Part shown: positions 41,725 through 64,000 of the stretch, piece after piece | How positions within the stretch are numbered: the stretch's first letter is position 1 | How the letters are laid out: each line of letters begins with the position of its first letter | NCBI GenBank assembly: GCA_965112735.1 | Contig: OZ218965.1 | Coordinates: 434,001 to 498,000 of the forward strand | DNA: 64,000 nucleotides | From: Phaeosaccion multiseriatum | Taxonomy: Eukaryota; Protista; Ochrophyta, other classes | Direction of reading: 5' to 3' | Translations under genes and position numbers: made by a program | Notes under the pieces: model-generated | Told to the model about the DNA's origin: nothing | Databases searched by the model: none | What the model saw: the letters and a program-made list of their open reading frames with translations, nothing else

Positions 41725-43640
41725 GGGAGGGAGGGAGGGAGAGAGGGACGAGGGAGGGAGGGGGGGGGGAGGGGGAGGGAGGGAGAGAGAGGGACGAGGG
41801 AGGGAGGGAGGGACGGAGGGAGGGAGGGAGTGATGAAGGGAAGGAGGGAAGCACGGAGGGAGGGAGGTAGGGAGGGAGGGAGGGAGGGAGGGAGGAAGGG
41901 AGGGATGAAGGGAGAGAGGGAGGGAGGGAGGAGGGAGAGGGAGGAAATCGGCGAGTGACTCATCTCTCTTCTCTAGGGAGTGAGAAAGTGAGTGAGCGAG
42001 AGTGTGAGGGAGGGACGGACGAAGAAAGGTAGGTAGGGAGGGAGGGAGGGAGGGAGTGAGGTACGGAGAAAGGCGGGAGGGAGCGAGGGAGGGAGGGAGA
42101 GAGAAGGAGGGAGGGAGGGAGGGAGGGAGGAAGAGAGGGAGGGAGGGAGGGAGGGAGGGAGGGAGGGAGGGAGGGAGGGAGGGAGGGAGGGAGGGAGGGA
42201 GGAAGGGAGGGAGGGAGGGAGAAAGAGAGGGAGGGAGGGAGGGAGGGACAGAGGGAGGGAGGAAGGGAGGGAGGGAGGGAGGCACGGAGGGAGGGAGGGA
42301 GAAAGGGGGGAGGGAGGGAGAAAGGGAGGGAGGGAAGGAAGAAGGGAAGGAAGGAGGGAGGGACGGGGTAAGAGGGAGGGAGGGAGTAAGAGAGGGAGGG
42401 ACAGAGGGAGGGAGGTTGGGAAGAGGGGAGGGGGGGAGGGGGGGAGGGAGGGAGGGAGGGAGGGAGGGAGGGAGGGAGGGAGGGAGAGAGAGGGAGAGAG
42501 GAAGGGAGGAGGGAGAGAGGGAGGGGATCGGCGAGTGACTCATCTCTCTTCTCTAGGGAGTGAGAAAGTGAGTGAGCGAGAGTGTGAGGGAGGGACGGAC
42601 GAAGAAAGGTAGGTAGGTAGGTAGGTAGGGAGGGAGGGAGGGAGGGAGGGAGTGAGGTACGGAGAAAGGCGGGAGGGAGCGAGGGAGGGAGGGAGAGAGA
42701 AGGAGGTAGGGAGGGAGGGAGGGAGGAAGAGAGGGAGGGAGGGAGGGAGGGAGGGAGGGAGGGAGGAAGGGAGGGAGGGAGGGAGAAAGAGAGGGAGGGA
42801 GGGAGGGAGGGATAGAGGGAGGGAGGAAGGGAGGGAGGGAGGGAGGCACGGAGGGAGGGAGGGAGAAAGGGGGGAGGGAGGGAGAAAGGGAGGGAGGGAA
42901 GGAAGAAGGGAAGGAAGGAGGGAGGGACGGGGTAAGAGGGAGGGAGGGAGTAAGAGAGGGAGGGACAGAGGGAGGGAGGTTGGGAAGAGGGGAGGGGGGG
43001 AGGGGGGGAGGGAGGGAGGGAGGGAGGGAGGGAGGGAGGGAGGGAGGGAGGGAGGGAGGGAGGGAGGGAGGGAGGGAGGGAGGGAGGGAGGGAGGGAGGG
43101 AGGGAGGGAGGGAGGGAGGGAGGGAGGGAGGGAGGGAGGGAGGGAGGGAGGGAGGGAGGGAGGGAGGGAGGGAGGGAGGGAGGGAGGGAGGGAGGGAGGG
43201 AGGGAGGGAGGGAGGGAGGGAGGAAGGGAGGGAGGGAGAGAGGGAGGGGATCGGCGAGTGACTCATCTCTCTTCTCTAGGGAGTAAGAAGGTGAGTGAGC
43301 GAGAGTGTGAGGGAGGGACGGAGGGAGGGAGGGAGGGAGGGAGGTAGGGAGGGAGGGAGGGAGGGAGGGAGGGAAGGAGGGAAGGAGGGAGGGAGGGGGG
43401 GAGGGAAGGAAGGAAGGAATGACGGAAGGAGGGAGGGACGGAGTAAGAGGGAGGGATGGAGTAAGAGAGGGAGGTAGAGAGGGAGAGAGGTTGGGAAGGG
43501 GCGAGGGAGGGAGGGAGGGAGGGAGAGGGGAAGGGAACGACGGACGAGCGGAGGGACGGACGGAGAGAGGGAGAGGGAGGCGAGGGATAAAGGCTGGATG
43601 GAGGGAGGGATGGAAGGACGGAGGAAGGAAGGGAGGGACT
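41725..43640 (+). repeat. (GGGA)-rich higher-order repeat: three units of about 580-720 bp, each with a unique core
   Basis: Core CGGCGAGTGACTCATCTCTCTTCTCTAGGGAGT at about 41949, 42529 and 43252. Confidence 0.9.
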
Positions 43641-43749
43641 CACTCCTTGTCCTGACACCCACCCACCCACTGTGTCTGACATCCCTCCGCGCAGGTGGCG
43701 GCGGAGGCGAGAAGGGCTCTCAACGCGCTGAACGAAGAGGTGAGGAGTG

Positions 43750-46636
43750 GGTGTCAGGACAGTGGGTGGGTGAGTGTCAGGACAGTGGGTGGTTGGGGGT
43801 CAGGACAGTGGGTGGGTGGGTGTAAGGACAGTGGGTGGGTGTCAGGACTGAGAGTGGGTGGGTGTCAGGACAGTGGGTGGGCGTCAGGACAGTGGGACGT
43901 CAGGGCAGTGGGTGGGTGGGTGTCAGGACAGTGGGTGGGTGTCAGGACAGTGGGTGGGTGTCAGGACAGTGGGTGGGTGCGTGTCAGGACAGTGGGTAGG
44001 TGAGTATCAGGACAGTGGTGTGTGGGTGTCAGGACAGAGGGTGGGTGGGTGTCAGGACAGTGGGTAGGTGAGTATCAGGACAGTGGTGTGTGGGTGTCAG
44101 GACAGAGGGTGGGTGTGTGTCAGGACAGTGGGTAGGTGAGTATCAGGACAGTGGTGCGTGGGTGTCAGGACAGAGGGTGGGTGTCAGGACAGTGGGTGGG
44201 TGTCAGGACAGTGGGTGGGTGTCAGGACAGTGGGTGGGTGCGTGTCAGGACAGTGGGTAGGTGAGTATCAGGACAGTGGTGTGTGGGTGTCAGGACAGAG
44301 GGTGGGTGTGTGTCAGGACAGTGGGTAGGTGAGTATCAGGACAGTGGTGCGTGGGTGTCAGGACAGAGGGTGGGTGTCAGGACAGAGGGTGGGTGGGTGT
44401 CAGGCCAGAGGGTGGGTGGGTGTCAGGACAGTGGGTGGGTGTCAGGACAGAGGGTGGGTGGGTGTCAGGACAGTGGGTAGGTGAGTATCAGGACAGTGGT
44501 GTGTGGGTGTCAGGACAGAGGGTGGGTGTGTGTCAGGACAGTGGGTAGGTGAGTATCAGGACAGTGGTGCGTGGGTGTCAGGACAGTGGGTGGGTGTCAG
44601 GACAGTGGGTGGGTGTCAGGACAGTGGGTGGGTGTCAGGACAGTGGGTGGGTGCGTGTCAGGACAGTGGGTAGGTGAGTATCAGGACAGTGGTGTGTGGG
44701 TGTCAGGACAGAGGGTGGGTGGGTGTCAGGACAGTGGGTAGGTGAGTATCAGGACAGTGGTGTGTGGGTGTCAGGACAGAGGGTGGGTGTGTGTCAGGAC
44801 AGTGGGTAGGTGAGTATCAGGACAGTGGTGCGTGGGTGTCAGGACAGAGGGTGGGTGTCAGGACAGTGGGTGGGTGTCAGGACAGTGGGTGGGTGTCAGG
44901 ACAGTGGGTGGGTGCGTGTCAGGACAGTGGGTAGGTGAGTATCAGGACAGTGGTGTGTGGGTGTCAGGACAGAGGGTGGGTGGGTGTCAGGACAGTGGGT
45001 AGGTGAGTATCAGGACAGTGGTGTGTGGGTGTCAGGACAGAGGGTGGGTGTGTGTCAGGACAGTGGGTAGGTGAGTATCAGGACAGTGGTGCGTGGGTGT
45101 CAGGACAGAGGGTGGGTGTCAGGACAGAGGGTGGGTGGGTGTCAGGCCAGAGGGTGGGCGGGTGTCAGGACAGTGGGTGGGTGTCAGGACAGAGGGTGGG
45201 TGGGTGTCAGGACAGTGGGTGGGTGTCAGGACAGAGGGTGGGTGGGTGTCAGGACAGTGGGTAGGTGAGTATCAGGACAGTGGTGTGTGGGTGTCAGGAC
45301 AGAGGGTGGGTGTGTGTCAGGACAGTGGGTAGGTGAGTATCAGGACAGTGGTGCGTGGGTGTCAGGACAGAGGGTGGGTGTCAGGACAGAGGGTGGGTGG
45401 GTGTCAGGCCAGAGGGTGGGTGGGTGTCAGGACAGTGGGTGGGTGTCAGGACAGAGGGTGGGTGGGTGTCAGGACAGTGGGTAGGTGAGTATCAGGACAG
45501 TGGTGCGTGGGTGTCAGGACAGAGGGTGGGTGTGTGTCAGGACGGTGGGTGGGTGTCAGGTGAGGGTATCAGGACAGTGGTGTGGGTGGGTGGGTGCAGG
45601 ACAGTGGGTAGGTGAGGACAGTGGGTGGGTGTCAGGCCAGAGGGTGGGTGGGTATCAGGACAGTGGTGCGTGGGTGTCAGGACAGTGGGTGGGTGTCAGG
45701 ACAGTGGGTGGGTGTCAGGCCAGAGGGTGGGTGGGTGTCAGGACAGTGGGTAGGTGAGTATCAGGACAGTGGTGTGTGGGTGTCAGGACAGAGGGTGGGT
45801 GTGTGTCAGGACAGTGGGTAGGTGAGTATCAGGACAGTGGTGCGTGGGTGTCAGGACAGAGGGTGGGTGTCAGGACAGTGGGTGGGTGTCAGGACAGTGG
45901 GTGGGTGTCAGGACAGTGGGTGGGTGCGTGTCAGGACAGTGGGTAGGTGAGTATCAGGACAGTGGTGTGTGGGTGTCAGGACAGAGGGTGGGTGGGTGTC
46001 AGGACAGTGGGTAGGTGAGTATCAGGACAGTGGTGTGTGGGTGTCAGGACAGAGGGTGGGTGTGTGTCAGGACAGTGGGTAGGTGAGTATCAGGACAGTG
46101 GTGCGTGGGTGTCAGGACAGAGGGTGGGTGTCAGGACAGAGGGTGGGTGGGTGTCAGGCCAGAGGGTGGGCGGGTGTCAGGACAGTGGGTGGGTGTCAGG
46201 ACAGTGGGTGGGTGGGTGTCAGGACAGTGGGTGGGTGTCAGGACAGAGGGTGGGTGGGTGTCAGGACAGTGGGTAGGTGAGTATCAGGACAGTGGTGTGT
46301 GGGTGTCAGGACAGAGGGTGGGTGGGTGTCAGACCAGAGGGTGGGTGTCAGGACTGAGGGTGGGTGGGTGTCAGGACAGTGGGTAGGTGAGTATCAGGAC
46401 AGTGGTGTGTGGGTGTCAGGACAGAGGGTGGGTGTGTGTCAGGACAGTGGGTAGGTGAGTATCAGGACAGTGGTGTGTGGGTGTCAGGACAGAGGGTGGG
46501 TGGGTGTCAGGCCAGAGGGTGGGTGTCAGGACTGAGGGTGGGTGGGTGTCAGGACAGTGGGTAGGTGAGTATCAGGACATTAAGTAAGTGGGTGTCAGGA
46601 CACAGGAGTGCACAGGAATGGGTGGGTGTCAGGACT
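43750..46636 (+). repeat. G-rich minisatellite with core GTGTCAGGACAGTG and variable GGGT spacers
   Basis: More than 100 copies of (G/A)TCAGGACAG in 19-25 bp units with higher-order blocks. Confidence 0.97.
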
Positions 46637-47131: not shown

Positions 47132-49304
47132 ACTGCTGCAGGCTATGGCAGCGGAGCGCCGTGCTCGAGGAATATCTCACTCTCTGCCGTCCCCTCCTCT
47201 CGAGCTTGACCACGGGGAGAATCGAGATAGTCGACGTCGTCGTCGAAGCACCAATCCGCAAACAACAACAGATGACGACTGCTCGGAGGACTCACAGTTG
47301 TCGGAAGAGGAAGGGGAAGGAGAGAGGCGAAAGAAGAGACGACGGGGTTCGAGGGGGGATGGCAGTGGAAGGCGGAGGAGTGGAAAGCAGCAGGTGGGTG
47401 GGGTGGGTGGATGGCAGTGAATGACAGTGGGTGGGGTGGGGGGATGGCAGTGAATGACAGTGAGTGAGGTGGGGGGTGGCAGTGAATAACAGTGGGGTGG
47501 GTGTGGTGGGTGGGTGGTAAAGAGGAGAGGAGAGAGGGGGTGTAGTGCTGGCTACTTGTTTTGGCTTGCTTGGTACTTGTTTTGGCTTGCTTGCTTGCTT
47601 GCCATACAATCAACCACCTTGTTGAGTCACTGTGGAGTCACTGCGGTGTCACTGTCGATTGGAACTTGCTTTCTGTATCATTCCATCCTATAGAGGGAAA
47701 GGGTGTGGCGACATCGGTAGCTGCTTCAGCCTCTCTTCTCCTCTTCTCTTCCTCTAACCATCCCCTCCCCTCCTCTTCCCCCTCTCCTTCCTCCTTTGCC
47801 CTCCCCCTCCCTTGCCCCCCCCCTCCCCTCCCCTCCCCTCCTCTTCTCTCTCCTATCCCCTCATCCTCCCTCCCCTCCCCTCCCCTCCCCTCCTCCTCCT
47901 CCTCCTCCTCCTCCTCCTCCTCCTCCTCCTCCTCCTCCTCCTCCTCCTCCTCCTCCTCGTCCTCCTCCTCCTCCTCCACCTCCTCCTCCTCCTCCTCCTC
48001 CTCCTCCTCCTCCTCCTCCTCCTCCTCCTCCTCCTCCTCCTCCTCCTCCTCCTCCTCGTCCTCCCCTCCCCTCCTTCACCGTACTCAAGCGCACATGTCC
48101 TTCCTCCTCCGGTGGAGTATGCGTTTCCGACGATGACGACAACAACCGTTTCGGAAACGATGAGGGTGAAGGGGAAGATGGAAACGACTCCTCCCACCCC
48201 CGCCCTCCCCGACAGCGCAACCGCAGCGAATCACCAGTTGCTTCCTATGGCGTCCTCACAGGCAACAACAACAACAACAACAAGAACAATCATACCACCA
48301 ACACCTCCGGCAGCGGCAGCAGCGGCAGCAACAGCAAGAGCGGGCGCCCCTCCTCCTCTGGATCCAAGAAGAAGAACGACAGTACCTCCCCGTGCCAGAC
48401 GGTTGCGGCTTTGGATTAAAGGACGGAAGGGCGGAGGGAAGGAGTGAGGGTTGGAGGGACGGACCGAGGGACGAGGGAGGGAAGGAGGGAGGGCGGGAGG
48501 GAGGGAGGGAGCTAGGGAGGGAAGGAGGGAGGGAGAGAGAGGGAGAGGGAAATGGAGAAACTGACGGACGGAGGGATGGATGGATAGAGGAAGGGAGGGA
48601 GGGAGGGAAGGAGGGAGAGAGGGGGAGAGGGAAGGAGGGAGGGAGGGAGGGAGGGAGGGAGGGAGGGAGGAAGGGAGGGAGCGAGGGAGGGAGCGAGGGG
48701 GGTGGAGGGACAAGATGTGGGCTGACACACCGCACTTGGCATGTCGCCATGTGTATGGCTGGCTCCCTCCCTCGGACGCAGCCTCACTCACTCTCTCCCT
48801 CGGTGCGTGTGGGCGCGTGTGTGTATGCGCGTCTTCCCTAACATTGGCTCCCCACACCGTCAAGTTCGGCGACGGCGCTGCCCTGCACCCCGACCAGTCG
48901 GAGGAGCAACTGAAGATGGCCTTCACCACCATCCGCCTGCGCAGCCCCTCCCCGCCCGGCGCCAGTTGAGAATACAAGTAGCTCGGTGTGATTGGGCGTC
49001 CACATCTTAGAGCGATTGGGCATCCGCTGCTTGTGATTGGGGAAAGGGCTCACTCAGGGTCCTATTCTCTCGACCCACCCACTTGTCATCCACTGCCATG
49101 GACTACGTGCATTCATCCCTTTATCCATTATGCGTCCTTCCGTCCCGCGGATGGTTCAAGATGAGAGTGTGTACGCCCTCACACACATCTTTCTGCCTCT
49201 AGGCGTCCCTCTTCACTTCCTGTCGCCCCCTCCCTCCCTCCTTCCCCAAGTTTCTTCCTCCCTCCTTCCTTCCCTGCCTCCCTCCTTCCTACCCTCCCTT
49301 CTCT

Positions 49305-51186
49305 CTCCCTCCCTCCCTCCCTCCCTCCCTCCCTCCCTCCCTCCCTCCCTCCCTCCCTCCCTCCCTCCCTCCCTCCCTCCCTCCCTCCCTCCCTCCCTCC
49401 CTCCCTCCCTCCCTCCCTCCCTCCCTCCCTCCCTCCCTCCCTCCCTCCCTCCCTCCCTCCCTCCCTCCCTCCCTCCCTCCCTCCCTCCCTCCCTCCCTCC
49501 CTCCCTCCCTCCCTCCCTCCCTCCCTCCCTCCCTCCCTCCCTCCCTCCCTCCCTCCCTCCCTCCCTCCCTCCCTCCCTCCCTCCCTCCCTCCCTCCCTCC
49601 CTCCCTCCCTCCCTCCCTCCCTCCCTCCCTCCCTCCCTCCCTCCCTCCCTCCCTCCCTCCCTCCCTCCCTCCCTCCCTCCCTCCCTCCCTCCCTCCCTCC
49701 CTCCCTCCCTCCCTCCCTCCCTCCCTCCCTCCCTCCCTCCCTCCCTCCCTCCCTCCCTCCCTCCCTCCCTCCCTCCCTCCCTCCCTCCCTCCCTCCCTCC
49801 CTCCCTCCCTCCCTCCCTCCCTCCCTCCCTCCCTCCCTCCCTCCCTCCCTCCCTCCCTCCCTCCCTCCCTCCCTCCCTCCCTCCCTCCCTCCCTCCCTCC
49901 CTCCCTCCCTCCCTCCCTCCCTCCCTCCCTCCCTCCCTCCCTCCCTCCCTCCCTCCCTCCCTCCCTCCCTCCCTCCCTCCCTCCCTCCCTCCCTCCCTCC
50001 CTCCCTCCCTCCCTCCCTCCCTCCCTCCCTCCCTCCCTCCCTCCCTCCCTCCCTCCCTCCCTCCCTCCCTCCCTCCCTCCCTCCCTCCCTCCCTCCCTCC
50101 CTCCCTCCCTCCCTCCCTCCCTCCCTCCCTCCCTCCCTCCCTCCCTCCCTCCCTCCCTCCCTCCCTCCCTCCCTCCCTCCCTCCCTCCCTCCCTCCCTCC
50201 CTCCCTCCCTCCCTCCCTCCCTCCCTCCCTCCCTCCCTCCCTCCCTCCCTCCCTCCCTCCCTCCCTCCCTCCCTCCCTCCCTCCCTCCCTCCCTCCCTCC
50301 CTCCCTCCCTCCCTCCCTCCCTCCCTCCCTCCCTCCCTCCCTCCCTCCCTCCCTCCCTCCCTCCCTCCCTCCTCCCTCCCTCCCTCCCTCCCTCCCTCCC
50401 TCCCTCCCTCCCTCCCTCCCTCCCTCCCTCCCTCCCTCCCTCCCTCCCTCCCTCCCTCCCTCCCTCCCTCCCTCCCTCCCTCCCTCCCTCCCTCCCTCCC
50501 TCCCTCCCTCCCTCCCTCCCTCCCTCCCTCCCTCCCTCCCTCCCTCCCTCCCTCCCTCCCTCCCTCCCTCCCTCCCTCCCTCCCTCCCTCCCTCCCTCCC
50601 TCCCTCCCTCCCTCCCTCCCTCCCTCCCTCCCTCCCTCCCTCCCTCCCTCCCTCCCTCCCTCCCTCCCTCCCTCCCTCCCTCCCTCCCTCCCTCCCTCCC
50701 TCCCTCCCTCCCTCCCTCCCTCCCTCCCTCCCTCCCTCCCTCCCTCCCTCCCTCCCTCCCTCCCTCCCTCCCTCCCTCCCTCCCTCCCTCCCTCCCTCCC
50801 TCCCTCCCTCCCTCCCTCCCTCCCTCCCTCCCTCCCTCCCTCCCTCCCTCCCTCCCTCCCTCCCTCCCTCCCTCCCTCCCTCCCTCCCTCCCTCCCTCCC
50901 TCCCTCCCTCCCTCCCTCCCTCCCTCCCTCCCTCCCTCCCTCCCTCCCTCCCTCCCTCCCTCCCTCCCTCCCTCCCTCCCTCCCTCCCTCCCTCCCTCCC
51001 TCCCTCCCTCCCTCCCTCCCTCCCTCCCTCCCTCCCTCCCTCCCTCCCTCCCTCCCTCCCTCCCTCCCTCCCTCCCTCCCTCCCTCCCTCCCTCCCTCCA
51101 TCCCTCCCTCCCTCCCTCCCTCCCTCCCTCCCTCCCTCCCTCCCTCCCTCCCTCCCTCCCTCCCTCCCTCCCTCCCTCCCTCCCTC
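49305..51186 (+). repeat. Near-perfect (TCCC)n tract of about 1.9 kb
   Basis: Only two visible interruptions (about 50371 and 51100). Confidence 0.97.
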
Positions 51187-52285
51187 GCTTTCCCACTCCC
51201 TCCCTCACTCCCTCCCTCCTTCCCTTCCCCCCTCCCTCCTTTCCTCCCTCTGTCCCTCTCTCACACTCTCGCTCACTCACTCACTCAGTCCCTAGAGAAG
51301 CGAGATGAGTCACTCGCCGACTCTTTCACTCCCTCCCTCCCTCCGTTCCTCCTTCGCTCCCTCCCTCCATCCCTCCCTCCCTCCCTCCCTCCCTCCCTCC
51401 CTCCCTCCCTCCCTCCCTCCCTCCCTCCCTCCCTCCCTCCGTCCGTCCGTGCCTGCATTTTTCTGTCCCTCCCTTCCGTCTCTCCCTCCCTCTCTCCCTC
51501 CCTTCCTCCCCTCCTCCCTCCCTCCCTCCCTCCCTCCCTCCCTCCCTCCTTCCCCCCCTCCCTCCCTCCCTCCCTCCCTCCCTTCCTCCCTCCCTCCATC
51601 CCTTCCTCCCTCCCTCGCTCCCTCCCTCCCTCCCTCCCTCCCTCCCTCCATACCTCTGTTCCACCTACATCCCATCCTCCCTCCCTCCCTCCCTCCCTCC
51701 CTCCATACCTCTGTTCCACCTACATCCCTTCCTGACTCCCTCCCTCCCTCCGCCCCTCACTACTTCTCTCTGTTCCTCCGTCCTGCCGTCACGCCCACCT
51801 TCCCTCCGTCCTTTTGTCCCGGCCTCCTTCCCCCCTTCCCTTCTTCCCTCCGTTCCTCCCTCCCTCGCTCCCTTGCTCCCTCGCTCCCTCCCTCCCTCCC
51901 TCCCTCCCTCCCTCCGTCCCTCCGTCCCTCCGTCCCTCCCTCCCTCCCTCCCTCCCTCCCTCCCTCCCTCCCTCCCTCCCTCCCTCCCTCGCTCCCTCCC
52001 TCCCTCCCTCCCTCCTCCTCCTCGTTCTCCTCCTCCTCCTCCTCCTCCTCCTCCTCCTCCTCCTCCTCCTCCTCCTCCCCCTCCTCCCCCTCCTCCCCCT
52101 CACCCTCCTCCTCCTCCTCCTCCTCCTCCTCCTCCTCCTCCTGGTCCTCCCCGTCCTCCTCCTCCTCCTCCTCCTCCTCCTCCTCCTCCTCTCCCTCATT
52201 CTCCTCGGGTGACAGAATAGCTACTGCGTCGCCCGTAGGTAAGACAGAGACAGGGATGGTCATGCTTGAGGTGAAAGTGCATGAG

Positions 52286-52803
52286 GTGAGTGAGTGAGTG
52301 AGTGAGTGAGTGAGTGAGTGAGTGAGTGAGTGAGTGAGTGAGTGAGTGAGTGAGTGAGTGAGTGAGTGAGTGAGTGAGTGAGTGAGTGAGTGAGTGAGTG
52401 AGTGAGTGAGTGAGTGAGTGAGTGAGTGAGTGAGTGCCTGAGTGAGGGAAAGAGAGAAGGGAGGGAGGGAGGGAGGGAGGGAGCGAGGGAGGGAGGGAGG
52501 GAGGGAGGGAGGGAGGGAGGGAGGGAGGGAGGGAGGGAGGGAGGGAGGGAGGGAGGGAGGGAGGGAGGGAGGGAGGGAGGGAGGGAGGGAGGGAGGGAGG
52601 GAGGGAGGGAGGGAGGGAGGGAGGGAGGGAGGGAGGGAGGGAGGGAGGGAGGGAGGGAGGGAGGGAGGGAGGGAGGGAGGGAGGGAGGGAGGGAGGGAGG
52701 GAGGGAGGGAGGGAGGGAGGGAGGGAGGGAGGGAGGGAGGGAGGGAGGGAGGGAGGGAGGGAGGGAGGGAGGGAGGGAGGGAGGGAGGGAGGGAGGGAGG
52801 GAG
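52286..52803 (+). repeat. (GTGA)n followed by (GGGA)n at the 5' end of an intron
   Basis: GTGAGT donor expanded to about 37 GTGA units (52286-52435), then (GGGA)n at about 52460-52803. Confidence 0.95.
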
Positions 52804-53343
52804 TGAGGGACGGAGGGAGCGAGGGAGCGAGGGAGAGGGGGAGCGAGGAAGGAGGGACGAAGACGGGGAAAGAGGGAAGGAGGGTGGGAGGGGGGGGAGG
52901 GAGGGAGGGAGGGAGGGCATGGGGGTTGATTTGGTGACGCTGTAGAGAATGGGAATATGGGCTCAGTTTGTTCACCTGGGGCCTGGGGAGGGGAGGAGTG
53001 AGGAAGAGGAGGGCTGTGCTCACTCCACATTCGCCAGTCCTGAAGGACGGAAGGAAGGAAGGAAGGAAGGACGAAAGGAAGGAAGGAAGGAAGGAAGGAA
53101 GGGGCAGATGGAGACAACACTGCACTGCTGTACCACCAACTGCTGCGGTTGCTGCTCGTTGTTGTGAAGCTTTGCGTTTTTTTGCTGTACCTCATTTTTC
53201 ATTTTGCTTGCGATTGCTGACATACTGTACACAACACACAAACAGGGCCAGGTGTGGCAGGTGCAGACCGACGTCATGAAGATTGTGTCTGTAGGGGCGG
53301 ACAGTGTCGTTGCGGTGACGGACATCAGCTCGGGAGAGCTCAT

Positions 53344-55318
53344 TGTTGAAAGTCAGTATTATGTCAATGGCCCAGGCCCAGGCAAATACGGTGAGAAACG
53401 GTGCGTGGCCCGTTTCTCACTCACCTCCCAGCAGGTTGGTCGTTTAGGATGGCTCACGGATAAAGCTAATAGAGACAAGGCTGGCTGCCAGGCTGGCTTT
53501 GGGGTTGCTATTACCTTGTCCATGCGGCTACTCCTATCCTAGGTGGAGAGCAACGTGACTCTTTACAACCCCAAAGAATCCCGAAGGCAGCTGACCTTGG
53601 CCAAGAGGCTCAGGCAGCAGCTCGGTAGCTTTGAGTTTGCCGGGAGCGGTGCCTTACAGCGGGCATGGCTTTCGAGTGTGGCAGCAGTACGGATGTTGCT
53701 GTTACACGGAAATTGCTGCTGGAGCTTGGTGGGCAGTGGAGATGGAGAATTGCCGGGAGCGGTGCCTTACAGCGGGCACGGCTTTCGAGTGTGGCAGCAG
53801 CACGGATGTTGCTGTTACACGGAAATTGCTGCTGGAGCTTGGTGGGCCGTGGAGATAGAGAATTGCCGGGAGCGGTGCCTTACAGCGGGCACGGCTTTCG
53901 AGTGTGGCAGCAGCACGGATGTTGCTGTTACACGGAAATTGCTGCTGGAGCTTGGTGGGCCGTGGAGATAGAGAATTGCCGGGAGCGGTGCCTTACAGCG
54001 GGCATGGCTTTCGAGTGTGGCAGCAGCACGGATGTTGCTGTTACACGGAAATTGCTGCTGGAGCTTGGTGGGCCGTGGAGATAGAGAATTGCCGGGAGCG
54101 GTGCCTTACAGCGGGCACGGCTTTCGAGTGTGGCAGCAGCACGGATGTTGCTGTTGCACGGAAATTGCTGCTGGAGCTTGGTGGGCCGTGGAGATAGAGA
54201 ATTGCCGGGAGTGGTGCCTTAGTCAGCGGGCATGGCTTTCGAGTGTGGCAGCAGCACGGATGTTGCTGTTGCACGGAAATTGCTGCTGGAGCTTGGTGGG
54301 CCGTGGAGATAGAGAATTGCCGAGAGCGGTGCCCTACAGCGGGCACGGCTTTCGAGTGTGGCAGCAGCGCGGCTGTTGCTGTTGCACGGAGCTTGGCGGG
54401 AGACAGAGAAGGATACTCGCAAGGCTGCTTTAGGGACTGTCTGGGTGCCTTGTAGGCACACCAGTAAACACTTGAGCAGTCAGCATTAGTGGTGCGCAAC
54501 GAGGCTTTGGCAACGCTGGTGGCGAGTAGGAGTGGAGATAGAGAATTGCGCGGGTGAGTTTGAGTCATGGGATGTTCTCATCCGTGAGCCTGTGTGGGTG
54601 AGTTTGAGTCGTGGGGTTTTCTCACCAATACAGGAGGGTGTGTGTTGGAGGAGCGGTCGCACACACCTGGGTGAGTTTTGCATATTTCTCATCCGTTTTT
54701 ATTGGAAGCAACATGGAGGCTTTTGCTACAAGTCGAGCTTTAGTAGGCGAACCCGCTTTGAGTTGCGTGGGGACACGCAATAGTTTAGTTCAGGGGGATG
54801 TTAGAAGTGCAGGGATGGCTGACGGGGATGTTGAAAGTCAGTATTATGTCAATGGCCCAGGCCCAGGCAAATACGGTGAGAAACGGTGCGTGGCCCGTTT
54901 CTCACTCACCTCCCAGCAGGTTGGTCGTTTAGGATGGCTCACGGATAAAGCTAATAGAGACAAGGCTGGCTGCCAGGCTGGCTTTGGGGTTGCTATTACC
55001 TTGTCCATGCGGCTACTCCTATCCTAGGTGGAGAGCAACGTGACCCTTAACATACGACTTCTAACAAGACCGTTGCTAGAAGACGAGCCCCCCCCCCCCA
55101 CCGCACATAGTGGAGAGAAGTAACTCGCAGTCTGAGAATCAGCATCATGGGCCTGCAAGCTGGTAACAGTTTTCGCCGAAAAATACGCTTTTTCACAAGC
55201 GACAGCTAAGGTTCGAACTCACAACTAGCCTTGTTAGAAGTCGTACTTTTGCTAGAGACACCTGCCCTCTGAATTCAGACCGGGAGGTATCAGTCTAGCA
55301 AAAGTACGACTTCTAACA
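53344..55318 (+). mobile_element. Non-autonomous LTR retroelement A (TRIM-like) with an extra 3' palindromic module
   Basis: 224-bp LTRs 53344-53567 and 54829-55052 (TG..CA; 2 mismatches seen). GGGGA purine run before the 3' LTR. Internal 113-bp array 53633-54390. TSD TCAT at 53340-53343 and 55319-55322. No gag/pol ORF. Confidence 0.92.
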
Positions 55319-55837
55319 TCATGATGAGCCTAATAGGGCACGCCTACGCTGTGTTACTGCAGCAGGCCTTCGACACCAAGAAGATCCTCTCGGCCTCCAG
55401 CGATGGCACCCTAAGGTGAGGCCGGACAGAGGAAGAGAGAGAGAGAGAGCGGCGTGACTTTGCTCTGCCGACCGCGGAGAGGGGGTGGGGAGGGTACTCA
55501 GAGGAGAGGAGCGGCACAGTGGAGAGGCCTACGGGTAGGGAGGTACTTGGGTATACACCCCCACCTCCTCCCCCCTCCCCCCTCACCCCCATCCACTGCC
55601 ATCCTCTGCAGATACTGGAGGTGGGTGGACTCTCGCAAGAAGCGTGAACACAAGTACCATATTGTGTCTGCAGGGGAGGGCCTCAGCCGAATTGCAGCCA
55701 AGCATGACGTGTCAGTCAGAGACCTCACGCGCTGGAGCGGAGTCACGGACCCGCGGTGGTGGTGGGTCACAACGGGTGCGTGTGGTGCAAGAGCAGAGGG
55801 GCAGATGGGGAAGTTATTTATTGACTTAATAGGCATC

Positions 55838-57596
55838 TGTAAAACGACGTACGCACGACCGACATGCGCTGTCGCCTACAGATAGGATAGAACTAGACAC
55901 ACGGACAAGGTAACAGCAACCCCAAAGCCAGCCTAGCAGCCAGCCTTGCCTCTATTAACTTATCGCATGCTAGTCCTAAACGACCACCTTCGCACATAGG
56001 ATAGTGAGAGCCACGCCACCCGTTCTCACTGTATCTGCCTGGGCCTGGGCCATTGACTTATGGCCCATCTCATGTGAGGCCTTCCAACATCCCCAATGCC
56101 TATCCCGGGGCCTTCCAACATCCCCAATAGCTATCCGCCACTTCCAACATCCCCTTGACAAGACTGTTGCGTGTCCCCACGCAACACAAGCGGATTCGCC
56201 TACTGAAGCTCGACTGTCGCACAAGCCTCCATGCTGCTTCCAAAAAAAGAAAACGGATGAGCATTATGCAACACTCACCCAGATGTGTGCGACCGCTCCT
56301 CCCACACACACCCCCTGTATTGATGAGAAAGTCCCACGACTCAAACTCACCCACACAGGCTCACGGATGAGAACATCCCACGACTCAAACTCACCCGCGC
56401 CATACCTTTCTCCACTCCTACTCGCCACCAGCGTTGCCAAAGCCTCGTTGCGCACCCCTAATGCTGACTGCTAAAGTGTTTACTGGTGTGCCTACAAGGC
56501 ACCCAGACAGTCCCTAAAGCAGCCTTGCGAGTATCCTTCTCTGTCTCCCGCCAAGCTCCGTGCAACAACAACATCCGTGCTGCTACCACACTCGAAAGCC
56601 GTGCCCGCTGTAGGCACCGCTCTCGGCAATTCTCTGTCTCCACTGCCCACCAACCTCCAGCATCCATTTCCGTGCAACAACAACATCCGTGCTGCTGCCA
56701 CACTCGAAAGCCGTGCCCGCTGTAGGCACCGCTCTCGGCAATTCTCTGTCTCCACTGCCCACCAACCTTCAGCATCCATTTCCGTGCAACAACAACATCC
56801 GTGCTGCTGCCGCACTCGAAAGCCGTGCCCGCTGTAAGACACCGCTCCCGGCAACTCTCTCTCTCCACTGCCCACCAACCTCCAGCATCCATTTCCGTGC
56901 AACAACAACATCCGTGCTGCTACCACACTCGAAAGCCGTGCCCGCTGTAAGACACCGCTCCCGGCAATTCTCTGTCTCCACTGCCCACCAACCTTCAGCA
57001 TCCATTTCCGTGCAACAACAACATCCGTGCTGCTGCCACACTCGAAAGCTGTGCCCGCTGTAGACACCACTCCCGGCAATTCTCTGTCTCCACTGCCCAC
57101 CAACCTTCAGCATCCATTTCCGTGCAACAACATCCGTGCTGCTGCCACACTCGAAAGCTGTGCCCGCTGTAGACACCACTCCCGGCAATTCTCTCCCTCC
57201 ACTCCCGCCTCTCCGTGCAACAACAACTCCGCTGCTGTCGCACGTCGTACGGCACTGCTTATGTGCCGCACTGTGCTCCCCTAACACGCCTCTTCCTTCC
57301 CTGCCTAAGCCTTTGGCTAAGTGCTGCTTTCGGGCCTTTGGGGTTGTAAAACGACGTACGCACGACCGACATGCGCTGTCGCCTACAGATAGGATAGAAC
57401 TAGACACACGGACAAGGTAACAGCAACCCCAAAGCCAGCCTAGCAGCCAGCCTTGCCTCTATTAACTTATCGCATGCTAGTCCTAAACGACCACCTTCGC
57501 ACATAGGATAGTGAGAGCCACGCCACCCGTTCTCACTGTATCTGCCTGGGCCTGGGCCATTGACTTATGGCCCATCTCATGTGAGGCCTTCCAACA
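55838..57596 (-). mobile_element. Non-autonomous LTR retroelement B, same family, inverted orientation
   Basis: 252-bp LTRs 55838-56089 and 57345-57596 (TG..CA, identical by eye). TSD CATC at 55834-55837 and 57597-57600. Internal 112-113-bp array at about 56555-57240. The interior is the diverged reverse complement of element A. Confidence 0.94.
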
Positions 57597-57811
57597 CATC
57601 ACCCTAAAAAACTGGAAGTGTGTGTGTAGCAGAGTAGAGCAGAGGGGATGGGAGGGGAAGGGAAGGGAGGGGTGAGGGAAGTGGCAGTCACCCAGACTTG
57701 AGACCACACGCACGCACGCACATAGGCATATATAGAAACGCAGGGACGCACACATATCGCACACATATATCTAAACATCCAAAGCACATGCACACACACG
57801 GCATACCCATC

Positions 57812-58304
57812 GCTCCCTCCCTCCTTCCCTCCCTCCCTCCCTCCCTCCCTCCCTCCCTCCCTCCCTCCCTCCCTCCCTCCCTCCCTCCCTCCCTCCCTCC
57901 CTCCCTCCCTCCCTCCCTCCCTCCCTCCCTCCCTCCCTCCCTCCCTCCCTCCCTCCCCCCCTCCCTCCCTCCCTCCCTCCCTCTCCCTCCCTCCCTCTCT
58001 CCCTCTCTCCCTCCCTCCCTCCCTCCCTCCCTCCCTCCCTCCCTCCCTCCCTCCCTCCCTCCCTCCCTCCCTCCCTCCCTCCCTCCCTCCCTCCCTCCCT
58101 CCCTCCCTCCCTCCCTCCCTCCCTCCCTCCCTCCCTCCCTCCCTCCCTCCCTCCCCCTCCCCCTCCCTCCCTCCCTCCCTCCCTCCCTCCCTCCCTCCCT
58201 CCCTCCCTCCCTCCCTCCCTCCCTCCCTCCCTCCCTCCCTCCCTCCCTCCCTCCCTCCCTCCCTCCCTCCCTCCCTCCCTCCCTCCCTCCCTCCCTCCCT
58301 CCCT
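57812..58304 (+). repeat. (TCCC)n tract
   Basis: About 490 bp, directly visible. Confidence 0.95.
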
Positions 58305-58590
58305 CGTACATACGCACCCCAACGCCACCGCTACGAACAAAATCTTCCCCTCTATCGCTCTAGTCACCGCAAGGTCCTCCAGCACAGTGGGGGCTCCTGC
58401 GCTGGCGGATGGTTCCCATAGGCGTCTCGTTTGGCAGAACGGAACGGACTGTGAAGAAGGTACCAGGCAGGGACAGTGGCTCCGTTGATGGTGAGGTCGC
58501 GGAGGTGGGGCCACAAGGGAACGTCGCCGAAGGAGTGCTCGATCCGTGTGGCGTTGAAGTGGGTAGGAGCGAAGGGAGGCCAAACAGAAA

Positions 58591-58664
58591 AGGGGGGGGG
58601 AGCTGGGATAGGCTCAATTACGTATTAAGGGGGGGGGAGCTGGGATAGGCTCAATTACGTATTA
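58591..58664 (+). repeat. 37-bp tandem duplication
   Basis: AGGGGGGGGGAGCTGGGATAGGCTCAATTACGTATTA x2. Confidence 0.9.
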
Positions 58665-59392
58665 TTAGGTAGGCAGGACAGTAAGTCAATGATGTGGGAC
58701 GCGGCCTTTTTGGGGGCTGGTTGGCCCCTCCGAATTACACTCCTGAACCCGTATAGACCAAGTGGATAGCTCTCCTTAAACAAGGAGGCTGTCCAGGGTC
58801 TTAGGGTGGGATAGCCCTTGTTATTTTAATACACTTGGTGCCAGCTTTGGACTCTTCTCTCTCCCTTATTGGGACCGGAACGCAGCGCCTAGCTTGGGGG
58901 TACCTTCCTCCTCTTAGGCAGAGGGAGGTAGCGGCCCCACACAAGGCAGGCACCCAAATCGCCGTGGGAAGCGACGAGACCACGGCCATGGAGCTCGACG
59001 ACGGAAGGGGAGAAACTCTTCGCTCCAGTGGCACTGTGGAGTCTCATAGATGTTGCACAAGTTGGAATGCGGTCTGTAGTCCTCATCTGGAGCTGGCCCC
59101 TCTTGCATGAACTGTTTCAGTCGCAGGTGGTGGAAAGAGGGAAGGAGGGTTGATAAGGGTCAATACAGACAACATCGAAGTACATACGATCTCCTAGCTG
59201 TTGGTTATCCTGTGTGTGCATTGGCGGCGACTCCACACACAGGGTGGCTCACCACGCCTGCCAAAGGCGGCGTCGCTGAGGAAAGTCCACTCCACCCACG
59301 CCTGATCAGTAGGCCGTTGGTAGAGTGGGTCTTCATGTAGCCGACGCGTGGAAGCCGCTCCGACTCCTTAGCGGCCATGCCGACCACCCGCG

Positions 59393-59605
59393 TGTGGAAA
59401 GTCAGTCGTATGTCAGTGGCCCAGGCCTAGGCAACGCAGTGAGAAACGGTGCCCGTTTCTCACCATCCTCCTGCAGGTGGTCGTTTAGGACAGTGCATAG
59501 ATAGGCTAATAGATACAAGGCCGGCTGTCAGGCTAGCTTTGGGGTGCTGCTGCCTTATCTGTGTGTCTAGTCCGTTTCGTGGAGGTCTAAGCACGACTTT
59601 CCACA
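59393..59605 (+). mobile_element. Solo LTR of the same family
   Basis: TGTGGAAAGTC...GACTTTCCACA ends. Shares GGCCCAGGC, the GTGAGAAACGG/CCGTTTCTCAC hairpin, GGTCGTTTAGGA and CTTTGGGGT with LTR A. No matching TSD. Confidence 0.85.
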
Positions 59606-59641
59606 CCTCCACATCCTGCACTCGCCATTTGTGACTCCCTC

Positions 59642-61779
59642 CTAATTTGCTTCTCCTTCCTCGCCTGCCCCGTTCACCTTTTTCTCCTCCACTCCATCTT
59701 CTTCTCCCAGTTCTTGAGAAGCCCACCCCTCTTCCCTCCTCCCCTTCCTCCCCCCTGCTGAGGGTGCAGCCCGAAGGCCCGTCTTGTTCATCCTAATGAT
59801 ATCTTGAATGCGGTCCGTTACCTTCTCAACGTAATCAGCCTCATACTGGTCTTCCTCATACACTTGGCCGGTTACGCTCGAGAGCTTAAGCAGAAGCTTC
59901 TGCCAGGCCTCCGGCCAGCCTTTCTCCGATTCACCTTCCTGTTCCCATGCCTTCCACTGCTTGTCTATCTCGGGATGAGCCTTGAGCAGCCGCTCCGTTC
60001 CGCTGTAGCAGTCGCCAGGGGTGAGTTTGTAGAAGAGGGGCACCACCCGGAAGTCCTCCTCCTTCTTCTCAAGCCTCTCCATGAAAATCTCTGTCTCCTT
60101 GAGGCACCACTCGCGGCAGAGGAAGTCAGGGCTGAGCACTAAGTCTTTCAATGCCTGCGCTCGCTTGTTCGAGCTGTCCATCGCATCTGGCATACGGAGG
60201 GAGACAACGAATCGACGCTCCTGCTCCTCAGCAGGAGTGCCACCACCGATGACCCCATGCTCAGCCTTCTCAAAAATGATGCCCAGGTCCATCAACCTTC
60301 CCAGCAGAGCCTTCACTTGTTGTTCGTCGAAAGCCCCTCCCCCGCCCCCTCCGCGACGAAGGAGAACGGCGTTCCATACCGATCCGGCAAAACCACTCGT
60401 CAGCACCCCGTCCTTCTTGAGTTTGTCGGCACCGCGCCTGTCCAGCTCAAGTCCAGAGTCGCCGTCGTCCTCTTGTCGCTTCGGCTTCAGTGCGGGTGTC
60501 AGAAGTCCCTTCGTTGGGGGGCAGAAGTAAAGAGCAATGCCGAGGATACGGCAGATGATGGAGGCAAACAAAGAGAACAATGTAGACAAGAGGGGGGGGC
60601 ATGTCAGACGGACGAAACATTACTAAACTCTGACCAACTTCTATTCATTCCTCTCTCTTTCCCATCTCCCTCAAGCACACACATACACACACCTTGTTGC
60701 GACCCAGTAGCACTTCACCACCGTCTGTAATGATGTCACCCGCCGGAGTCAGGAGTGGACTGATCAACTGGGAAAACAAGGCCGCCTCTGTAAGCACAAT
60801 AGCTGCACCTTTCTCCACGTCTCCAGCCAGCCACCACAAGTCTTCCGTTCTTGCTTGTCCTGCACGCACACCGAGAGATACATACAATGAGAGAGGCGCG
60901 GGAAAGCGATCTAGCTACCCCCGCGCGCGCCCCCCACGTGTGCTTGCGTTCCCTCTTGCCTCGGGCTCAAACCGTAACCTTGACCTTGTTCCAAACCGTA
61001 ATCACGCCAACCAAACCCTGTGAATCTCAACCATACCCAGCCAATAGGCGAGCTCAACTCCGCACGCAATCGCCCCGAACCCCCCCCCCGCACTTACAGC
61101 ATTTTGACTCCGCACTGGAGCATCACATCCGCAAGCTCCTTGTCCTCGTCTCCGTCTCCGTCCTTCTCGCACTTCACCTTCCACGCTTTCTTCACTTCAC
61201 CCATTCTTGTCACGAAGACGTGAATGTCTGCCATGTTGCCCAGCAGGGTCACTGCTTTCTGGAGCAAGGGACCCATTACGTACGTCTGGCCTAGGCCCAG
61301 TAACGTCTCCACCAACACCTTCAGCTCCTGCTCCCGGCCTCCCTCCTTCTGGCAGCTCGTCATGTGTATTTCTACCCCCAACACTATGCGCCCCTCCCGC
61401 AGCTCCTCTTTCACAGCACCGTGAACAAGCTCACAGTGTGCCGATAAATCGCTCTGACCCTCCCACGGGTCGCATTGATTGGCTACAAAGGAGCGCAGTG
61501 GACTCCGAAGCGCCGTGCCGGAAAGCTCTTTGGTCACGTACAAAAATCAAGCCCCATCCTCCAGAATATCCCTCTTCCAGAGAGCCAATCTTCTCACCAT
61601 ACAGCCTGTTGAAGGGCAGCTCGAACCTGGCGACATCCATTCTCCACCCGCACTCCATACCAATGCTCCAAGGGTCGTTCGGTGTACCATCCCCAAAAAT
61701 GATTCCACCCCTCTCCGTCTGTGGCCGCGAAGAGGGCCTTGAGTACGTCACGCCACTGCTCATCTACGCTCACCATCAT
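59642..61779 (-). pseudogene. Decayed LRR-(Roc)-COR-TIR Roco-type gene
   Basis: LRR N-cap RDVLKALFAATDGEGWNHFWGWYTERPLEHWYGVRVENG, frameshifted into VARFELPFNRLYG. Possible Roc G4 remnant FVANQCD. COR-like LLGRLMDLGIIFE..RFVVSLRMP fused directly to the C-terminal half of a TIR (LVLSPDFLCREWCLKET..VVPLFYKLTPGDC). Confidence 0.7.
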
Positions 61780-62355
61780 TTACTGGGTTGGGTTGGTTCT
61801 CGTTCGCGGTAACTCCTCCAATCCTGCCAAAGCATGCCCGAGAATCGCCCAAGCTTCCATGAACAATGCGACTGCTTGTTGGGCCTCAAAAGCAGGCCCC
61901 GAGCAGCAAACTCCTCGTGCAGTACTCAGACGGTAATTGTAGATCGAATGGTCAGGCGAAAGGAGTCGCCGCTTGCTCAGGCCGGGAAAGCTGTCCTTAC
62001 CCCAGTTGTCCTGTTCTGCTGCTCTTTTTCCTCTCCCTCCTGCTCCTGCCTCTGACCCTGCTGCTGCACAGATTTTTGTGAGGCGCAAGTGCTGCTCCAC
62101 CTACTGCTGTTGCTACAAGGAATCCTTCTACCACTGCTCCTGTCAGTCGTGCTGCGGAGGATAGCACCCCGGTGCCAATGGCAGGTGAATGTGCAACACG
62201 TAAGTCACAAATGGGTCGCAGAGGCGGGAAATGACAGCCTGCGCGTGTTCTCGGTGGGGCCGAGACGACGTACCGTCCTAGATCTGTGCAGCTCTGATAA
62301 GCGTGAGATGAGCTGCGTGACGAGGAAAGGTAAAGAGAGAATTTGCAATCACATG

Positions 62356-64000
62356 CTATTTTTTAGGCGCAGCCTTCTTTTCATCGAACTCCCTCACTAT
62401 CGTGTTCACCTCCTCGGTGACTCGCCTGGCGAAAGCGAACAGATCCTCTTGCTGGTCATTGCGGAGACCCGTGTGTGCTCCCACACCCCCCAGCAGGTCT
62501 TTCGCAAGCTCGTCCGCTGTCTTGAACTTGTCCTTCTCAAGCCAACCCCAATCCCCTCCCTCCCCTTCGCTCCACTTTCCCCATGTCTCCTTCACGCCGC
62601 GATGGTTGTCTTCTAATTTGCCCGTGTCCCCACATTCGTCAACCGTCAGCCCGAAAAAAAGCGGCACCAGCACTGCTTCCTTTTTCTCCGCCCTGTCCGT
62701 GAAGATTTGCATCTCCCGAAGAGGCCACTCTCGGCACACAAAAGACGGACTCAGCACGACCACGCCAATCGGGGCGGCGTTGGCTACCTCGAGCATCTTG
62801 TCCTCCGCGCCATCTCCTGCGCGCAAACTTGTCTCGTCCAAGAACGTCGCAATGCCTCTCATCTCCAGCATCCTGTAGAGCAGAAATACAATGCCCCGCT
62901 TCTCCGGCCCCGCGTGACTCAGGAAGACGTCGTAATTGTCAGTGTCACACCCTGCCCCTATCGAACTGAGGCTTGAAAACAGACCTTCCTTTGGAGGGAC
63001 ATCAGGGAGCTCGCTGTACAGCAGCCCCGGAAACCTATTGTCGAGAGTGCTCTTGAGCCATCCGTAGCACCTGTTCCGCACTTCTGAGACTCTTTCCCCA
63101 CCCCCGCTTGTTGGTACTGCGTACACAGCCGCATATTTTTCTCCCACCGCTACAAAAACCGCAATGTCTCCGACCAAGAGGAACGCGCTACTGCTCGAAC
63201 ACGCCTTTATGTCCACTCCTGTGTGACCACTGCCGACCGAAGCCAGAAAGAGCGCCAACGTGCTCACTGGAAAGGGCATGTTGTCGGCTCTGATCCCCTT
63301 TTCCCATACTTTGCCCCCTGCGCCCCAGCATCTGAATGCACGCAGAGGGCCCTGCTCACTCACACTCGCCAGGCGAGCTGGAACGACATATTCGCAAGTC
63401 TCCGCACCCTCCATCCCGACGGAAATGAGAATGCCCTGCCGCACCAAGGTGTCCCGCGTGCTCGTGAACAAGGCACCGTCTCCGAGGACTCTGTCTCGAG
63501 CGTCTTTCACCGCCTCGCTGTCTTCTTGAGCCTCTTCACCCTCCATCCGGCACTGGTGCCAATGCTTCCACAGAATGAATAGGTAGGCGGAATTCAGCCG
63601 GCCCGTGCTGCAAAAGGCGCCGTCCTGCTCGAGCAGCTTGCTGTACACCACTTTTTCTCCCACAAGGCATGTCTCAGTCTCCTCGGGCGCGAAGAGCTCT
63701 CCTTTACATTGGTTCCAGGCACCGCCCTCCTTTGTCTGACGCTCGCTCAGCTTGTGGTCAGCCAACGGCCTGATCAACGCCATCAACCACGTCGGGTCAA
63801 GATGCACCACCTCCAGGCCAGCAGCGCCTCCCAAAAGCACAAAGCCTGCAGTTTCGTGCAAGCGCAAGGCCTCCCTTGCGGTGTTACTGTCTCCCCCCCC
63901 CCTACAGCACGTCTTCCATGCGAACAGCCCTCTTGGTGTTGGTCGTGCCTTTTTTACCACGTCAGAAAAAGGAGAAACTACATGTCCCTCCTCCCTCATG
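62356..64000 (-). CDS. COR-TIR C-terminal part of a Roco-type protein, probably 5'-truncated by the window edge
   Basis: 547-aa open frame. COR-like ALRLHETAGFVL..VVHLDPTWLMALIRPL and LVRQGILI..YVVPARL. TIR YDVFLSHAGPEK..GIATFLDETSLRAGD..VVVLSPSFVCREWPLREM..LVPLFFGLT. Confidence 0.85.
   Translation of the reverse strand, partial: MREEGHVVSPFSDVVKKARPTPRGLFAWKTCCRGGGDSNTAREALRLHETAGFVLLGGAAGLEVVHLDPTWLMALIRPLADHKLSERQTKEGGAWNQCKGELFAPEETETCLVGEKVVYSKLLEQDGAFCSTGRLNSAYLFILWKHWHQCRMEGEEAQEDSEAVKDARDRVLGDGALFTSTRDTLVRQGILISVGMEGAETCEYVVPARLASVSEQGPLRAFRCWGAGGKVWEKGIRADNMPFPVSTLALFLASVGSGHTGVDIKACSSSSAFLLVGDIAVFVAVGEKYAAVYAVPTSGGGERVSEVRNRCYGWLKSTLDNRFPGLLYSELPDVPPKEGLFSSLSSIGAGCDTDNYDVFLSHAGPEKRGIVFLLYRMLEMRGIATFLDETSLRAGDGAEDKMLEVANAAPIGVVVLSPSFVCREWPLREMQIFTDRAEKKEAVLVPLFFGLTVDECGDTGKLEDNHRGVKETWGKWSEGEGGDWGWLEKDKFKTADELAKDLLGGVGAHTGLRNDQQEDLFAFARRVTEEVNTIVREFDEKKAAPKK

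Follow-up and report, generated by a model that had tools for sequence, protein, structure and literature searches.

ROCO proteins of brown algae that carry leucine-rich repeats (LRRs) are published candidate immune receptors (Zambounis 2012, PMC3341825; Teng 2024, PMC11378527). Brown algae have the simple LRR-ROCO form only, and none of the published brown-algal ROCOs (111 of 111) has a TIR domain: ROC-COR is the last part of the protein unless a peptidase or DUF900 domain is present (PMC11378527). ROCO cores joined to a TIR have been described in the red alga Chondrus crispus, which has a tetratricopeptide repeat (TPR)-ROCO-TIR protein (PMC11378527), and in molluscs, which have TIR plus ROC-COR proteins (PMC9334734). 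We have analysed a stretch of 64,000 nucleotides (nt) from the ochrophyte alga Phaeosaccion multiseriatum (contig OZ218965.1, positions 434,001 to 498,000; hereafter the window, numbered from its first letter), at the end of which lies a minus-strand open reading frame (ORF) of 547 codons. This ORF (62356..63999) has its first full codon at 63999 and its TAG stop at 62356-62358, and the ORF list and the translation show it still open at the window end. Judged from sequence comparison, 62359-63999 is probably the last exon of an LRR-Roc-COR-TIR gene belonging to the LRR-ROCO receptor family of brown-algal type. It was divided as follows:

62359..63999, minus strand: probable last coding exon of the ROCO-TIR gene, 547 codons (ORF list, translation and colinear alignment to relatives)
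63379..63999, minus strand: COR-A part, residues 1-207 (homology to the brown-algal region after Roc; alignment to the COR of Chlorobium tepidum)
62980..63378, minus strand: COR-B part, residues 208-340, the dimerisation half of COR (AlphaFold confidence of 80-94; alignment to COR-B of LRRK2)
62539..62937, minus strand: TIR domain, residues 355-487 (Pfam PF01582 and PF13676, PDB TIRs, PADLOC)
62713..62715, minus strand: codon of Glu429 within W-P-L-R-E, the Glu at the catalytic position of helix C (translation; alignment to AbTIR and BtpA)
62359..62538, minus strand: helical tail after the TIR, residues 488-547, common to the Chrysoparadoxa genes and to a neighbouring relic (family alignment, tblastn)

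Pfam placed a TIR domain (PF01582) on residues 355-487 (E 1.5e-13; score 51.4 bits, curated cut-off 21.3; model positions 1-141 of 179), and TIR_2 (PF13676) matched as well (E 5.5e-11; score 43.5 bits, cut-off 28). An earlier note, made from the letters of the window alone, had described a full TIR starting at about 62934 with FLSH and WPLRE motifs and a Glu at 62713-62715. Its coordinates proved exact, with YDVF spanning 62934-62923, FLSH 62925-62914 and WPLRE 62727-62713. The domain carries the strand-A motif D-V-F-L-S-H-A, the BB-loop pattern D-x3-L-x2-G-D and W-x-L-x-E. Comparison with PDB sequences revealed matches to bacterial TIRs (7uxr, E 3.3e-11; BtpA 4lzp, 7.8e-10; AbTIR 8g83, 1.5e-9; PdTIR, 5.7e-9) and to plant TIRs (AT1G72930, E 5.1e-9; Roq1, 3.4e-8; L6, 2.9e-7; the matches to Roq1, L6 and RUN1 spanning 3e-8 to 4e-6). 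The match to SARM1 was marginal (E of about 0.01), and no TLR, MyD88 or other adaptor TIR was found among the PDB matches at E<=1. PADLOC assigned the domain to PDC-S66 (3e-18) and ThsB (4e-8), and NCBIfam to the TIR of a retron anti-phage protein (2.4e-12). The language-model features of the ESM Atlas, used as a lead only, placed it nearest to Roq1-like plant and BdTIR-like clusters. In the PDB sequence alignments Glu429 was paired with the W-x-x-x-E Glu of AbTIR and BtpA, and in the family alignment this position is kept in P0001, P0003, P0016 and the neighbouring relic copy. From what is established for SARM1, plant TIRs and AbTIR, we take Glu429 to be the catalytic residue. As judged from these alignments, the TIR of this ORF is a complete domain of the enzymatic type known from plants and bacteria, and a C-terminal TIR of that type has probably been gained or kept in the LRR-ROCO lineage of brown-algal type. 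A single-sequence AlphaFold model of the whole ORF was unusable, with a predicted local distance difference test (pLDDT) of 36.

An HMMER search over 1.84 billion (1.84e9) representative proteins, at E<=1e-3, returned eight proteins. This exhaustive search gave no self-match, and the source genome is apparently absent from the collection. The matches were two Chrysoparadoxa australica proteins, an LRR-Roc protein of Cladosiphon (P0007, library-wide E of 5.5e-4, with the aligned region sitting after Roc), a Sphacelaria fragment, three ORFs from assemblies, and P0002, which was dismissed as a repeat-protein artefact made of 16 weak stretches. The genuine matches were built either as Roc-X-TIR (Chrysoparadoxa) or as LRR-Roc-X (brown algae), X being the part that aligned to residues 34-336 of our ORF. 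Since the query region was always placed where COR sits in the relatives, we read it as COR. Pfam found Roc in P0001, P0003, P0005 and P0007. A word-index protein search with the ORF gave no match although true relatives exist, and other word searches returned just seven and two proteins.

Residues 40-486 of the ORF are colinear with the Chrysoparadoxa Roc-COR-TIR proteins P0001 and P0003, and the alignment has no gap of intron size. It begins about 285 residues into these relatives, which places the first 40-50 residues of COR-A, Roc and any LRRs beyond position 64000. The Chrysoparadoxa proteins (CAM9907097.1, CAM9660036.1 and P0016) are colinear with the ORF in their Roc-COR-TIR order, being 33% identical to it along 420-450 residues, and they have its TIR motifs and its tail after the TIR. 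They differ in the GC content of their DNA (0.50, against 0.60 here) and in having split or truncated gene models. On GC content and the 33% identity, the source alga is not Chrysoparadoxa itself. Two contigs of Chrysoparadoxa australica (GCA_964200425.2; L001, 1-3590, and L002, 995-3781) were read directly. Both contained LRR exons of exactly 72 nt, encoding G-S-I-P-A-E-L-G-Q-L-S-S-L-x-x-L-x-L-x-x-N-x-L-S-G and lying between look-alike introns, followed by a linker, Roc (P-loop L-L-G-S-S-G-A-G-K-T-S, then D-F-A-G-Q and T-H-S-D), COR and TIR, with a single reading frame running from the linker through Roc and COR to the TIR. The public annotation splits one such frame into a Roc gene of 263 residues and a COR-TIR gene of 497 residues; the 72-nt exons upstream are unannotated, and the gene model on L001 begins inside Roc. 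In the literature searched, neither the Chrysoparadoxa genes nor any LRR-ROCO-TIR of a stramenopile alga was found described. The LRR-Roc-COR-TIR architecture is real in this gene family, as seen in the Chrysoparadoxa relatives, and it is highly probable that the gene at 62359-63999 is likewise a full LRR-Roc-COR-TIR gene.

Neither PF16095 (COR-A) nor PF25497 (COR-B) matched the ORF, and two of the three assembly ORFs among its relatives (P0004 and P0006) carry COR-B below threshold. COR was therefore assigned by fold and by family homology. A COR model was built with AlphaFold from a family alignment of 14 sequences (predicted template modelling score, 0.63), with a pLDDT of 80-94 over residues 220-340. 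The nine best PDB matches found by Foldseek with this model were all COR domains of Roco, LRRK1 or LRRK2, the top one being 3dpt_A (E 3.5e-5, 320 columns). VIA-align superposed the model on the COR of Chlorobium tepidum Roco (Z 13.1, 176 residues, model residues 65-333), on COR-B of LRRK2 (Z 10, root-mean-square deviation of 2.9 over 115 residues, model residues 208-336 against LRRK2 1671-1815) and on the COR of LRRK1 (Z 9.4). In a structure search run with a program other than Foldseek over 48,161 representatives, COR ranked first, four Z units above unrelated folds. In the ESM Atlas, the shape neighbours of the model were all Roc-COR proteins, and the feature search was concordant. The likeness to the C. 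tepidum, LRRK1 and LRRK2 domains thus lies in the COR-A/COR-B fold; identity to them is 10-13%, and COR is followed here by a TIR, with no kinase. A Pfam and NCBIfam scan of residues 1-350 returned only an RPEL repeat, which was dismissed as a chance match.

The homology to brown-algal proteins was detected in both directions. The COR-A part is homologous to the region after Roc in LRR-ROCOs of Cladosiphon, Ectocarpus, Pylaiella and Sphacelaria. A profile of the family COR matched the brown-algal proteins P0007 and P0010-P0015 with E-values from 1e-31 to 1e-119, and tblastn back to the window gave E-values from 1e-14 to 4e-7. The ORF contains the COR-A family motif H-L-D-P-x-W-L...P-L-A-D-H and keeps all the near-invariant COR residues (G52, L55, P69, W71, D81, H82, W95, F129, G133 and R209). 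P0007 and P0010-P0015 also lack Pfam COR-A and COR-B matches, and Zambounis et al. (PMC3341825) could not link the distal COR of Ectocarpus ROCOs by PSI-BLAST. Since Pfam misses the COR of brown-algal ROCOs too, the failure of the profiles is characteristic of this divergent lineage, and domain-based censuses will undercount COR in it. Three independent lines of evidence, drawn from the modelled fold and from family homology, show residues 1-340 to be COR, which bears out the COR-like region that the earlier note had seen before the TIR.

By this COR homology, the gene is placed in the ROCO family of brown-algal type, and the earlier note was right to bring in brown-algal LRR-Rocos as proposed immune receptors, a proposal that is published and concerns a homologous family. 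Besides COR, the likeness extends to the N-terminal cap kept by the relic copy, to the 72-nt one-LRR exons of the Chrysoparadoxa relatives and to a COR that Pfam misses; the differences are its C-terminal TIR and its origin in an ochrophyte outside the brown algae. The Chondrus and mollusc proteins have in common with it a Roc-COR core joined to a TIR, but their sensors are TPRs, a Toll-like receptor (TLR) ectodomain or death domains, with no exon-cassette LRR array, and the HMMER search gave no sequence relative from red algae or molluscs. Plant TIR-NB-LRR proteins (TNLs) such as Roq1 and RPP1, and SARM1, resemble it in that a sensor made of repeats is combined with a nucleotide switch and with a TIR bearing the catalytic Glu. 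Unlike in the plant proteins, the switch here would be a Roc GTPase with a COR dimeriser and not a STAND ATPase (signal transduction ATPase with numerous domains), and the TIR is C-terminal, not N-terminal. Pfam found no NB-ARC or NACHT in the ORF; the switch of the relatives is Roc, with a faint NACHT match at the level of the P-loop in P0001. By analogy, the gene would thus work like a nucleotide-binding LRR receptor (NLR), and in particular like a plant TNL, but it is no member of the NLRs, having no STAND ATPase. Its expected unit would be a dimer, as against the tetrameric resistosome of plant TIR-NLRs.

In Roco proteins, COR mediates dimerisation and is coupled to the nucleotide cycle of Roc, TIR NADases need self-association to form their active site, and brown-algal LRR-ROCOs evolve like receptors. 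On this basis, we propose that a ligand would be bound by the LRR array and that sensing would alter the nucleotide state of Roc and the COR-mediated dimer. This change in Roc and COR would bring two C-terminal TIRs together as an active assembly, which would cleave NAD+ via Glu429, and the output would be ADP-ribose-type signals or NAD+ depletion, leading to defence or cell death. Roc-COR would thus fill the place that NB-ARC has in plant TIR-NLRs. By analogy with characterised TIRs, we slightly favour a Glu429-dependent NADase step, and the gene may have an immune role. Tentatively, and with less confidence than for that step, we put forward that non-brown ochrophytes (the source alga and Chrysoparadoxa) could carry an expanded birth-and-death family of LRR-Roc-COR-TIR proteins acting as GTPase-gated NADase immune sensors, in which the logic of TNLs would have been invented independently.

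The locus was also followed in contigs assembled from sequencing runs. Contigs of two runs of one sample showed no difference from the window across 61133-62509 and 62781-63767. Contig breaks coincided with several-fold rises in summed depth at the TIR cores of the gene and of the relic (62480-62787 and 60016-60323), and likewise at two other blocks of the relic (60632-60785 and 61094-61401). The depth rises fit the presence of many near-identical (at least 95%) pieces of the family elsewhere in the genome, a fit that gives no copy count. Base differences from the main ORF in contigs of a second sample fell within 62980-63550 of the window.

Several observations weigh against the proposed receptor. 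No COR profile of Pfam or NCBIfam matched residues 1-350, whole or as halves, even at E<=10. The earlier note had staked its reading on such a match, and on this point it failed as worded, COR being recovered through structure and homology. A profile of eight family COR regions found no match among PDB sequences, and the COR model is of moderate quality only (mean pLDDT 66.9, with residues 1-41 below 50). The Roc and LRR parts of the gene lie beyond 64000, outside the 64-kb window, so that the LRR-GTPase-TIR reading of the earlier note is borne out by the COR-TIR end present here and by the complete architecture in the relatives. A Glu at the catalytic position is required for NADase activity and does not prove it, and the immune role is one that we infer. 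No RNA run contained the locus, the stretch having been found in DNA contigs only. Finally, all 11 differences of the second-sample contigs on the ORF are nonsynonymous, and seven of them lie in residues 273-303 of COR-B; they could reflect relaxed constraint, contigs of a paralogue or diversifying selection.

The TIR could instead be a non-enzymatic docking module that recruits further TIR proteins through contacts between TIRs, as happens in animal TLR/MyD88 signalling, without cleaving NAD+. The TIR-ROCO combinations of molluscs have been read as adaptors of TLR/MyD88 type (PMC9334734), which lends this explanation some support. However, the PDB matches lack adaptor TIRs, the best of them being NADase-active bacterial and plant TIRs, and the Glu of W-x-L-x-E is kept in all members of the family, including the Chrysoparadoxa genes, so we consider docking unlikely. 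It is also quite unlikely that the gene encodes a housekeeping or developmental ROCO GTPase, such as the Roco proteins of Dictyostelium, with a TIR serving general stress or NAD+ signalling. The diverse non-immune roles of ROCO proteins (background in PMC11378527) and the lack of an RNA run containing the locus would be compatible with such a function, but the family falls within the ROCOs with LRR exon cassettes, which evolve by exon shuffling (PMC3341825) and whose 72-nt exons are present in the relatives, it is multi-copy with decayed copies, and its lineage is narrow, as the eight matches among 1.84e9 proteins indicate. Taken together, exon cassettes, decayed copies and a narrow lineage are the pattern of receptor families with fast birth and death.

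The gene might itself be dead, as its neighbour is, either as a COR-TIR fragment severed from Roc and LRRs or as an unexpressed copy. The adjacent copy is indeed a relic and the second-sample differences are all nonsynonymous; against this stand 547 codons without a stop, the retention of all near-invariant COR residues and TIR motifs, and a frame still open at the window edge, the very point at which the relatives run into COR-A and Roc. We regard a dead copy as very unlikely.

If the proposal of a GTPase-gated NADase receptor is true, a plant-like TIR would extend TIR-nucleotide immune signalling into stramenopile algae, and the TIR end of ROCO receptors would seem to have been lost in brown algae. 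The brown-algal LRR-ROCOs have no recognisable output domain, which has made the idea of an immune receptor hard to test since 2012. A sister family that shares their sensor and switch and has a TIR whose catalytic Glu is intact offers an assayable output, NAD+ cleavage, and with it a handle on whether TIR-nucleotide signalling works in stramenopile algae. STAND ATPases and SARM1-type octamers are two ways of linking sensors to TIRs, and this family would represent a third. This significance is tempered by the Roco-TIR combinations already known from a red alga and molluscs.

A second copy of the gene lies at 59645-61779, on the same strand and 577 bases downstream of the main ORF. It is colinear with it but broken, and the following pieces were recognised:

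61636..61779, minus strand: start codon and N-terminal LRR cap ending in W-Y-G-V-R-V-E-N-G, at 61636-61662 (BLASTP)
61596..61637, minus strand: the only LRR, F-E-L-P-F-N-R-L-Y-G, followed by GTGAG (three-frame reading)
61097..61546, minus strand: C-terminal part of Roc (F-V-A-N-Q-C-D, G4-like) and linker (BLASTP)
59780..60154, minus strand: TIR from strand C onward, and tail, with the stop at 59642-59644 (family TIR profile)

The earlier note had described a tandem paralogue bearing an LRR cap. The copy and its cap are present, the cap matching the N-terminus of a Pylaiella LRR-ROCO (P0013; BLASTP E 2e-7), but what follows is broken and internally deleted. The LRR is out of frame with the cap, the break lying at about 61636-61637, where the X1 and X3 contigs show no difference from the window; these contigs may be the assembly's own data. 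The Roc tail matched residues 320-379 of an Ectocarpus ROCO (P0014, whose Pfam Roc spans 212-332) with an E of 9e-5. No G1-G3 motifs, P-loop or Pfam Roc match were found in the block 61097-61546, and the Roc tail is followed by COR-A-like scraps. In the last ORF of the relic (59645-60619), the family TIR profile matched at positions 73-193 only (E 1.4e-37) and Pfam TIR at model positions 62-132 only. W-C-L-K-E is kept, with its Glu at 60095-60097, and the N-terminal half of the TIR is missing or unrecognisable: upstream of the TIR half, the COR profile scored 4.8 bits and the family TIR profile aligned nothing. On these alignments, we interpret the neighbouring copy as an internally deleted pseudogene relic and not as an intact paralogue. 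Its TIR half is 37-43% identical to Chrysoparadoxa P0003, as against 32% to the adjacent main gene, which indicates that the two copies represent old distinct lineages and not a recent tandem duplication.

Beyond the stop of the relic, a very high-copy repeat (59400-59707 of the window, with a depth a few hundred times that of single-copy sequence) ends at 59605, 37 bases past it. Contigs of three runs break at this position, and the second sample carries on with a different sequence. The repeat is probably the end of a long terminal repeat (LTR) element at 53344-59605, the insertion of which may be polymorphic.

Elsewhere in the window, kilobase-long (GGGA)n / (CCCT)n tracts occur in both orientations (41725-43638, 49228-52015, 52283-52917 and 57813-58305) and account for its extreme GC skew. 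The window also has a satellite of 23/68 nt (43747-46606) and, at 53637-54390 and 56557-57203, two arrays built of a unit of 112-113 nt. The consensus units of these arrays contain stretches that are each other's reverse complement, and the two arrays are therefore one repeat in opposite orientations.

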